Origin: Podarcis erhardii
Lineage: Eukaryota
Length of the DNA stretch: 64,000 nucleotides
Reading direction: 5' to 3' (one strand)
Assembly: GCA_964252035.1 (NCBI GenBank)
Contig: OZ176202.1
The notes under the pieces were generated by a model. That model worked only from the letters and a program-made list of their open reading frames with translations. It ran no database searches and was not told the origin of the DNA. Shown here in pieces: positions 14,401-17,400 of this stretch. Numbering within the stretch: the stretch's first letter is position 1; each line of letters begins with the position of its first letter. Both the position numbers and the translations under genes were made by a program.

Positions 14401-17400
14401 TTTTATTGAAAGGAAAATCAAATTACCTTACTTTGCAACAGAACACTACTGAAGGTGTTCCTGAAAAACTCGATTTTAACCACGATATCTGGGGCATACA
14501 AAGTTAGATACATGTTTCATTCAGTTTTATTGCTATTTTTTGTTTTACTCTGTCAGAATGGATGAATGCTTTCTGATGTGGTGTGCATTTTTCTCTCTCT
14601 ACCCATAACAGGAAAAAAGGAAATGAAAAAAAAAAAGTTATCTTTCCAAATCTAGGCTTGCGTAGGGTGGATTTAAACCTCAGCAGTTCTATTCATACAC
14701 AACTTTCCTTATATTCAGCCTGGCAGCTAGTATATAGAAAGAACATGAATTTTACTACCTATCATTTTCTTTAACTCTGACTTTTATAATCACAGACTTG
14801 CAAAAGACCCACTGGTTTCTGTAGTCATACCTTTTCCTACCTAGGACAGCATATCCTGTAAAACAGGGGTGGCTAAACATTATAAAGCAGCACTTCCATC
14901 CCTCCCCATTCCAGTGCTGCAGTGGGTGGGGGTGTGGCTAGAAGTGCTCCCTTTCACTTTACACAGATCGTTCTGGGGAAAGTAAAGGGCAGCATTTTCT
15001 CCCAACCTCACTCCTGCAAATGAGTGTAGGGTGTGGGTGGTAATGCTACCTTTTACAGTAGGCCCACAACTTAACATGGGGCACCATTCTAGGGATCATG
15101 CCTAAAGCCAAAATCACATATAGTCAAAACCCATTTGGTACAATGGCAGGTGGGATCACTAAAGTAATTTTTTTCCTGGAACCCCACCCCCTTTTAATTT
15201 TCTTTTATTTGCCACATGCATAAAGCTGAATATGCACAAGTTAAATGCATGCAAGTTGTGGGCCTATTGTACTCGTAAATAGCAGTCAGAGGATCTTATT
15301 TTTGATCTTAGCGCTGTGGTTCATAGCACTAAGACTGAAGATAAAGGATCCCCCTGTCTACTATATAAAGAGGATAAAAAAAGATCTCCAAATAGCAGGC
15401 AGAGCACTTTTTTCAATCAGACTGTGGGAGTTGGCATGTCAGTTCCCATCAACCCTGACTGTAGGCCAGGCTTGCTGGAGCTGTTGGGAGTCAAACAATC
15501 TCTGGAGGAGCACAAGCTGCCCACCCTTGTAATAGTTCATTAACCATAACTGAAGTTTTATTAAATGCATATTAAATGGAATTATGATGTTTTGTTTCCT
15601 TTTTGCTCCTCTGCTCTTTTCTACTCTTTTCTGTCCTAATAATGTTAAAGAAATACTTTGTTACAAAGAGCCTTTTTCCCTTTTATAAAATTAAAGCTAG
15701 AAATGATTTGTTCTGTTAAAAATGAATTAAGAATATTGAGATGTGTACATCAGTATCCCTGCCTTGTTTTCCAGACATTTGTATCACTGCTTGGTATCTC
15801 TCAGATGGTTCTGTTCTTCAGAAAAGGAGAATAGCCGCATACCTCTTCGGTTGGAGGGGGTGCACCTCTGTTGCTTTCTTTTCACACTCATAGTTAAGTA
15901 TGTGAAAGCTAATGTGCTATTTCCCTCCTTGTAGGTGTGGATGAGCATTCCCTTGACAGCTCTCCAGTACCAGATGACAGATCAGCACTTTATTCTGGAG
16001 TTCACAAGAAGCAACTTTACTCAGATAGCTCTACTGAGAAACAGCCAGATGAGGACTCTGACTCACTCACCACATCTCCTTCATCGAGCAGCCTAGATAC
16101 TTGGGGTACTAACAGGAAATTGCTCAAGACCTTCAGTAAATCTGAAAGCCGTGGCCTTATCAAACCCCCCAAGAAACTTGGAACATTTTTCTCCTACCCA
16201 GAAGAGGAGAAGACTCCAAAGGTTTGCCGCTCCTTGACTGATGGAGAGATGAAGAAGAACCTTGGTTCTCTGAGCCACGGGGTAAGTAAAGAAAGCGTTT
16301 GCTTTTATGACAACAGGCGCAAGCACCATGTCTTGGTATCCTTTGAGGAAATCCAGAGTGTCAGGAAGCAGATCCGACTGAAAAAGACAGATTCTAACTA
16401 CTCGTGTTCTAGAGCTTTTCTTTGCCAGCGCCCTGCTAGGAAATACATATCACCCTCAATTTGTGACCTGCAGCTGCTTCGTCACAAAGCCAAGGGGGTA
16501 GGAGGAGGAGGAGGCTGTGGCTTCCCAAACAGAAGGCTTCGAGGGCGCAACTCTGTCAGCGAGTTCAATATCACGTATGTGGTAGAAAGAAGTCTCTACA
16601 GTCACCTGAACCTGTCACATCTGGTGCGGCCCGTTACTGACAGGACACTGAGCAAAGCTGAAGAGCAGGATTTGAGGCGATGTCTGCTGGAAGAAGAGGA
16701 TGAGGCAAAGAGGAAGTGGGCTGCCACAATGGACCGCTGTACTAAAAGGGTTCTTTTGAGAATCCACCAAAAGTCTGTGAGTCCAAGAGTTATCACTGAC
16801 AGAGGCCTTCTGGCTCCCATGAGTTTGCAGTCAGCATGGCGTGTTTTCCTCCACCATAACATCTGAAATGCATAGTTCATTGGCCTTCTCTTCTCCTCCG
16901 CTCCTCAATTATTTGCCAACAGGATGTTCTAATAAGTGTTTGGACAGAGTGTCCTGGTCCCCAGTGTCCAAACTGGCAAAATATTAAGGGGAAACACATT
17001 GCCCTTATGATTCAGGATGACTAAAGGCAAGAAAAGCACTTTTTTGGTGCAGAAACACAGGTTTGCATTGAAAAGTAATAATAATGAAGCTATAGCATTC
17101 TTTAGCAGAAATGATAAAACCACAACTTCACTCAGCTATATTCCTCCTTATCCGTATAACTTTTTACAAACACGCTACCCCCACTTTTGAGTACTCAGGT
17201 TTTTTGGTGTCCTTGGATAATGGAGGTTAGTTAGTTGTTTTCAGGGTATTTATACCCCAACCTTCCACAATAAAAGCATCAGAGCAGTTTGCAAAATTTA
17301 AAGAATAATAAAAGGACAGTAAAAGTATCAGGTGATCCTGCAGAACATTGAAAGCAGTGGTGGGCTGCAGGTGTTATTTGGCCTTTGGGTCCATCTTCCC

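Follow-up and report, generated by a model that had tools for sequence, protein, structure and literature searches.

The 64,000-nucleotide stretch of the Podarcis erhardii genome analyzed here (contig OZ176202.1 of assembly GCA_964252035.1; hereafter the window) carries exons of the SASH1 gene on its plus strand, and the element under study is a long extension of one of these exons into sequence that reference models treat as intron. The exon in question is the final one of the SASH1-specific N-terminal region (Table 1). In the canonical models, namely that of a bird (P0033) and a further one (P0050), its equivalent is joined directly to an exon opening with the residues RTCSFGGF, which in the window is the first exon of the SPIDER region. 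The splice donor used for this canonical join (donor 1) is followed by a reading frame that stays open for 194 further codons (16282-16863). Within it lies another candidate donor (donor 2), placed 495 nt beyond donor 1, so that both donors are in phase 0. As the acceptor of the RTCSFGGF exon is likewise in phase 0, the 165 codons between the two donors are in frame with both neighboring exons; a transcript read across donor 1, whose hexamer then encodes Val-Ser, and spliced at donor 2 would specify SASH1 with an internal insert. We present evidence that such an in-frame long isoform of SASH1, formed via donor 2, is the best explanation of the extension, and assign this reading a probability of about 80%.

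SASH1 exons in the same orientation lie on both sides of the extension: SASH1 models match the exon before it, the open reading frames (ORFs) downstream match the SPIDER and SAM domains, and exons of the SH3 region and the C-terminus of SASH1 are also present in the window. The stop-to-stop frame that includes the exon and its extension (15913-16866, 317 codons) ranks second in length among those of the plus strand of the window, after a large SASH1 coding exon of 433 codons (40709-42010). The GC content of the extension is 0.49, with a peak of 0.53, as against 0.30-0.45 in the flanking intron, and its ratio of observed to expected CpG dinucleotides is 0.48, the flanks giving 0.0-0.24 and the canonical exon 0.21. 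An earlier note, made from the letters of this DNA, had proposed a hidden in-frame insertion via a downstream alternative donor, on the basis of the 194-codon open frame, the phase shared by the second donor and the next exon, and the enrichment in GC and CpG over the flanking intron. All these readings could be reproduced and the peptides it quoted were correctly read; the insertion itself, for which the note had suggested a check of conservation and selection across loci, is supported by the comparative evidence of selection, donor conservation and gene models of other species given below.

A word search with the 309-residue ORF comprising the exon and its extension, the reach of which was limited to proteins of at most 926 residues, recovered 83 matching database proteins, most of them over more than 90% of the query. 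For the most part these are ORFs predicted on contigs from Logan, JGI or ENA; the named records come from Ascaphus truei, Hymenochirus boettgeri, Acipenser sinensis, Cirrhinus mrigala and Oncorhynchus nerka and, in further searches, from Sarcophilus harrisii, Apodemus speciosus, Acipenser ruthenus and Anguilla anguilla. Overall, the named sources comprise frogs, sturgeons, eel, carp, salmonids, catfish, the Tasmanian devil and a field mouse. More than 60 protein clusters share the reading frame of the exon and its extension, and in the 60 clusters measured the extension has 131-222 residues. In a 24-sequence protein alignment that includes six mammal-like ORFs (A1), conservation begins directly at donor 1, with the HG-VS residues at this point being invariant, spans the whole extension, and stops exactly at the QKS/VS boundary, which corresponds to donor 2. 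The mammal-like ORFs (P0005-P0023, P0025, P0026, P0049, P0055, P0087) were excluded from two other alignments (A2, A3) and from all estimates of selection. One of them, the Logan ORF P0055, shows frame disruptions within the extension and is back in frame before the ...HQKS terminus; it may represent a lineage with a decaying insert or a poor assembly.

The ratio of nonsynonymous to synonymous substitution (dN/dS) was estimated by the Nei-Gojobori method on a codon alignment of nine loci, namely the window, three sauropsid-like Logan contigs, an Ascaphus contig, an A. sinensis scaffold and three teleost-like contigs. For the whole extension dN/dS is 0.06-0.15, which is as low as the 0.08-0.18 of the canonical exon; a value of 0.29 was obtained in one deep sturgeon-teleost pair, in which synonymous divergence is saturated. 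The constraint is spread over the entire segment, with values of 0.05-0.15 in each of three sub-segments for all pairs but the closest, whose changes are too sparse for an estimate; the first 49 codons give 0.05-0.09 and the last 77 codons 0.03-0.115. Immediately beyond donor 2 the ratio climbs to around 1, with values of about 0.5-2. The proportion of synonymous sites that differ (pS) is 0.4-0.8 across the extension, as opposed to 0.04-0.1 for nonsynonymous sites (pN), the respective values for the window and the locus L001 being 0.466 and 0.061. Hence, as synonymous sites diverge and replacement sites do not, the extension is conserved as a protein and not as a nucleotide sequence. Furthermore, its lengths in the nine loci (474-555 nt) are without exception divisible by 3, all insertions and deletions being frame-preserving, and the tails past donor 2 vary by lineage in both sequence and length, from 3 to more than 40 codons. 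From teleost fish to mammals, the extension is conserved as genuine protein-coding sequence, under strong protein-level purifying selection that ends exactly at donor 2.

Two further features bear on how this sequence is translated. The frame is always continuous between the upstream SASH1 exon and the extension, and no column of a 40-sequence alignment of the insert has Met in more than 15% of the sequences. In the absence of a conserved start and with an unbroken frame, the insert must be translated from the upstream exon, by reading through donor 1; the purifying selection on the first 49 codons in turn implies that the full extension is translated.

The two donors are themselves conserved. 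The GTAAGT hexamer of donor 1 is identical in all nine loci, and is preceded on the exon side by GG, or by GA in one teleost-like locus. At donor 2 all 12 bases of AAGTCT/GTGAGT are identical in nine of nine loci, synonymous positions included, and synonymous positions close by vary freely (CAC/CAT, CAA/CAG, AGA/CGC/CGT). Third-codon positions that are fixed at GTGAGT and then followed by an unconstrained tail point to a used splice donor, given that a C-terminal dipeptide would need no such fixity.

Table 1. Features of the SASH1 exon extension and its surroundings, in window coordinates (a slash marks the exon-intron boundary).
Feature	Position	Strand	Remarks
Canonical SASH1 exon	15935-16281	+	115 full codons and a split first codon; acceptor AG at 15933-15934
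Donor 1 (proximal), GTAAGT	16282-16287	+	CACGGG/GTAAGT at 16281/16282; donor of the canonical isoform
Alternative coding extension	16282-16776	+	495 nt, 165 codons, in frame with the upstream exon
Acceptor-like tract (pyrimidine run and CAG)	16416-16428	+	Inside the extension, after ...AFLCQ
Best-conserved part of the insert, residues 89-165	16546-16776	+	From the basic motif onward; 26 invariant columns in 40 sequences; dN/dS 0.03-0.115
Predicted 40-residue amphipathic alpha-helix, insert residues 125-164	16654-16773	+	AlphaFold2; hydrophobic moment up to 1.2
Donor 2 (distal), GTGAGT	16777-16782	+	AAGTCT/GTGAGT at 16776/16777; the long form of the exon ends here
Read-through tail	16783-16866	+	Unconstrained; closes at TGA 16864-16866
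Next exon, first of the SPIDER region	21117-21188	+	Opens with AGA, the R of RTCSFGGF; 21188/GTGAGT; acceptor for both donors

Precedents for the distal junction are found among annotated proteins of other species, as the earlier note had suspected when it allowed for similar extensions among predicted isoforms. As searches of cluster representatives hide the non-representative members, the full-length long isoforms surfaced only when the members of clusters were listed. The annotated models with the junction include: 1) the 1443-residue SASH1-like isoform X1 of Salvelinus fontinalis (XP_055728076.1, RefSeq) and isoforms X1 and X2 of Ictalurus punctatus sash1a (XP_047015670.1 and XP_047015672.1, RefSeq), in all of which the full extension is followed by RTCSFGGF. 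2) MGH0141662.1 of Acipenser sinensis (GenBank), with the full extension likewise joined to RTCSFGGF. 3) KAG5846494.1 of Anguilla anguilla (GenBank), which has the same join and departs from the other sequences in the middle of the extension. 4) A model of Apodemus speciosus (P0088) in which the extension is reduced to its final two thirds, followed by the same QKS/RTCSFGGF junction. A model of Acipenser ruthenus (P0089) uses donor 2 in a different manner, with QKS joined to EAIYKEVV and the RTCSFGGF exon skipped. Both junctions are known from annotated models only, the canonical one from P0033 and P0050, and the distal one from P0095, P0162, P0163, P0090, P0142 and P0088. To our knowledge, transcript support is a prerequisite for the alternative isoforms that the NCBI pipeline predicts; the models of the sturgeons and of Apodemus come from genome annotations in GenBank, the evidence base of which is not checkable. 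From these models and the conservation of the donors we infer that the junction from 16776 to 21117 is used in Podarcis erhardii.

The Apodemus model joins SHG to RPSRKG exactly at an acceptor-like tract inside the extension (Table 1), the CAG of which is kept in five tetrapod-like loci and is replaced by CAA in three teleost-like ones. This tract may be a secondary splice site in tetrapods, and with the join as modeled the final two thirds of the extension would be a cassette exon.

In several other organisms (O. nerka, Alosa, Chanodichthys, Salvelinus alpinus, Sarcophilus) the extension carries labels of the type 'uncharacterized protein LOC..., partial' or 'hypothetical'. The pipelines thus detect its coding signal without tying it to SASH1, and several such 'uncharacterized protein LOC...' entries are really the SASH1 exon extension. 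Four partial 'uncharacterized' proteins of salmonids, Alosa and a cyprinid (P0051, P0067, P0148, P0093) consist of the extension read through donor 2, and look like annotation errors that merit correction. A teleost-like second copy of SASH1 (P0069-P0083) keeps the HG/VS sequence at donor 1, then continues into unrelated sequence and a stop, without the extension. The module appears to be retained in one of the two fish copies only, which by the name of the catfish protein is sash1a.

No relation of the insert to a Pfam family or a solved structure was detected. Neither Pfam searches with the insert and 40 homologues (no match at E<=10) nor a PDB profile search with the insert (no match at E<=1) returned any family, and a HMMER search against 1.84 billion cluster representatives retrieved 12 proteins, all of them extension ORFs of the same type. 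In composition it is basic (34 K+R against 18 D+E residues) and has seven cysteines; along its length it presents several conserved short motifs, a variable glycine-rich linker, a basic patch and a terminal helix. An AlphaFold2 model of the 165 residues, built with a 40-sequence alignment, has a mean predicted local distance difference test score (pLDDT) of 55 and is mostly of low confidence, with helices at residues 94-113 and 125-164, the end of the latter reaching a pLDDT of 78-92. When the last 85 residues are modeled alone, the mean pLDDT rises to 70, and the terminal helix (residues 45-84 of this fragment) attains 84-95. The insert is hence predicted to be mostly disordered, with a confidently modeled terminal helix.

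In the long models, the Pfam SPIDER profile (PF12485) starts, at profile position 3, with the last residue of the insert (residue 726 of P0095, 643 of P0162 and 582 of P0090), which places the insert precisely where the SASH1-specific N-terminal region gives way to the disordered SPIDER-SH3-SAM1 core. The position just before the SLY/SPIDER region that the earlier note had proposed agrees with these profile boundaries. We also considered and set aside three other views of the insert. That it is a part of SPIDER is not compatible with the lack of any Pfam match within it, SPIDER beginning only at its last residue. A PH/GRAM-like domain, weakly suggested by an ESM Atlas feature search (0.75-0.79), has no counterpart in the Pfam and PDB results, and the AlphaFold2 model shows helices and disorder without a beta sandwich. 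An internal repeat was sought by blastp against the rest of the SASH1 models and the ORFs of the window, which gave one weak match to an antisense intronic ORF (35236-35547) that lacks nucleotide backing and was taken as chance. Elsewhere in the window, a long low-complexity frame on the minus strand (3251-3868) is composed of poly-K, poly-R and poly-W runs arising from simple repeats, and a GC-rich segment of approximately 600 bp within the intron that precedes the final exon (42988-43563) has open frames on both strands and no second copy in the window by blastn.

As to mechanism, we propose that the two 5' splice sites of exon 15935-16281 compete for the acceptor at 21117. Use of the strong proximal donor at 16281/16282 would give the canonical protein, whereas skipping it in favor of the distal donor at 16776/16777 would add 495 bases to the mRNA and yield SASH1 with a 165-residue insert. 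The choice of donor would be regulated by tissue, and the insert would serve as an additional docking or regulatory module that alters the binding properties of the scaffold next to SPIDER. The probable role of its terminal helix is to dock a partner or to fold back onto the neighboring SPIDER/SH3 region.

Certain observations weigh against the use of donor 2 for a long isoform, and have to be set beside the evidence for it. None of the Logan-assembly ORFs bearing the extension continues into RTCSFGGF, all of them running into the intron; long-form transcripts may be rare, or the Logan contigs may be genomic. No full-length protein with the insert was retrieved from the 1.84 billion cluster representatives, where clustering hides such isoforms, and no full-length amniote model with it was seen in the searches, of which the word search reached proteins of up to 926 residues and the representatives hide non-representative isoforms. 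Donor 1 is near-perfect, close to the consensus, yet must be bypassed for the long form. In the Sarcophilus harrisii protein P0085 (KAM8998841.1), an ORF that shares 91% identity with the window in the conserved part, the equivalent of 16777-16779 encodes QKS-IS and not QKS-VS, whereby donor 2 would start with AT instead of GT; this change may reflect genuine loss of the donor, a site of the AT type, or an error in the sequence. Lastly, some annotations end by read-through past donor 2, namely three models of Hymenochirus boettgeri (495-529 residues), one of Acipenser sinensis (P0028), and those of O. nerka (P0051) and Sarcophilus (P0085). These annotations, the Sarcophilus substitution and the lack of the distal junction in Logan ORFs are also what would favor a truncated SASH1 as the main product, in which donor 1 is skipped and the transcript ends in or retains the intron, leaving the N-terminal region with a conserved tail but without SPIDER, SH3 and SAM. 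We regard this as unlikely: an unconstrained tail would not need the invariance of AAGTCT/GTGAGT amid changing synonymous sites, the density of poly(A) signals past donor 2 is at the background level, with no excess, and the full-length RefSeq models splice at donor 2. Moreover, the truncated and the long form could coexist.

A variant of the splicing model, in which donor 2 is mainly joined to a partner other than the 21117 exon or the extension is partly used as a cassette through the acceptor near 16428, could draw on the Acipenser ruthenus join to EAIYKEVV, on the start of the Apodemus model at RPSRKG and on the CAG kept in tetrapod-like loci. It is given a low probability, considering that five other models use the 21117-type exon, that the dN/dS of the first 49 codons marks them as translated, that the internal CAG is CAA in teleost-like loci, and that both precedents belong to the GenBank annotations whose basis cannot be inspected. 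A small gene of its own, nested within the SASH1 intron, might be read from the short or partial proteins annotated in O. nerka, Alosa pseudoharengus, Chanodichthys, Salvelinus alpinus and Sarcophilus; with no Met column to start from, a frame always continuous with the upstream exon, conservation that sets in at donor 1, and models that are marked partial, such a gene is very improbable. The treatment of the stretch as intron in reference models and the failure to match Pfam or PDB entries would be expected of a chance open frame or a non-coding element (a poison exon, splicing regulator or enhancer), to which we accord a practically negligible likelihood, as the frame is open in more than 60 clusters and all indels preserve it. 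In particular, a chance ORF and an enhancer are refuted by the free pS alongside low pN and by these frame-preserving indels, and a poison exon acting as a switch for nonsense-mediated decay by the fact that inclusion up to donor 2 is in frame and brings no premature stop, with synonymous sites being free. The long isoform made by splicing at donor 2 thus remains our preferred explanation.

SASH1 has been studied as a tumor suppressor, as a gene for pigmentation disease, and as a scaffold in endothelial cells and innate immunity. We know of no work that treats it as anything other than a single 1247-residue protein, and a literature search on SASH1 isoforms, splice variants and PhyloCSF yielded no paper describing the segment, in keeping with the earlier note's view of it as uncharacterized. 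We regard the extended exon of this genome as the orthologous counterpart of a long SASH1 isoform that has been predicted, yet is uncharacterized. A segment of 160-220 residues at the border of the SPIDER hotspot, under selection at the level of a constitutive exon, implies a second form of the protein with a function of its own. More tentatively, and with somewhat less than even odds in our estimate, the long form may be an ancient regulated isoform kept in amniotes including mammals, in which the helix and motifs form a module for docking or autoregulation that abuts SPIDER on its N-terminal side, and change how the partners of SPIDER, such as tankyrase, are engaged; published work on the 1247-residue protein, the maps of disease variants among it, would in that case have overlooked a functional portion of the gene. 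Should amniotes express the form, variants in this 'intronic' stretch could prove to be coding, one module would be missing from knock-out and rescue constructs designed on the short cDNA, and the conserved helix would offer a concrete handle for interaction screens.

Among known systems, the closest are the fish RefSeq long isoforms of S. fontinalis and I. punctatus, which have the same architecture, running from ...SHG through VS... to ...RVLLRIQQKS and on to the RTCSFGGF exon; in the 77 C-terminal residues of the insert, their identity to the window is about 75-80%. They are automatic teleost models, and differ in the N-terminal half of the insert (PDPNYAYSTKHLLYQR type, with longer proline/serine linkers). 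They also have an extra N-terminal SAM domain (residues 8-66 of P0095 and 6-66 of P0162; Pfam SAM_1, best E 2e-31), an equivalent exon for which would fall beyond the window; fragments of this fish N-terminal SAM region are called 'SAMD5-like' in other salmonids. The teleost second SASH1 copy shares donor 1 with the window and differs in reading from there into unrelated sequence. Canonical SASH1 is the same gene, its flanking exons and SPIDER, SH3 and SAM regions all being present in the window. The human protein (O94885) has 1247 residues, and its SPIDER region starts around residue 400 (PMC13467429). At about this residue the canonical form joins ...SLSHG directly to RTCSFGGF, which is the exact point of insertion, and the insert is absent from it, in line with the earlier note. 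The SPIDER-SH3-SAM1 core is the main interaction and disease-variant hotspot of SASH1, and the 2026 review of the protein uses neither the word 'isoform' nor 'splicing' (PMC13467429). This core is shared by the other members of the SLy family, SAMSN1 and SASH3 (PMC13467429); the HMMER search with the insert gave no match to a paralogue. Finally, the arrangement resembles alternative 5' splice-site extensions in general, which likewise have two donors of the same phase, one acceptor and an in-frame insertion. The SASH1 extension differs from this general type in being unusually long (about 500 nt), in being under selection as strong as that on the constitutive exon across bony vertebrates (records of teleosts, sturgeons, frogs and mammals), and in that the proximal donor which has to be skipped is close to the consensus.

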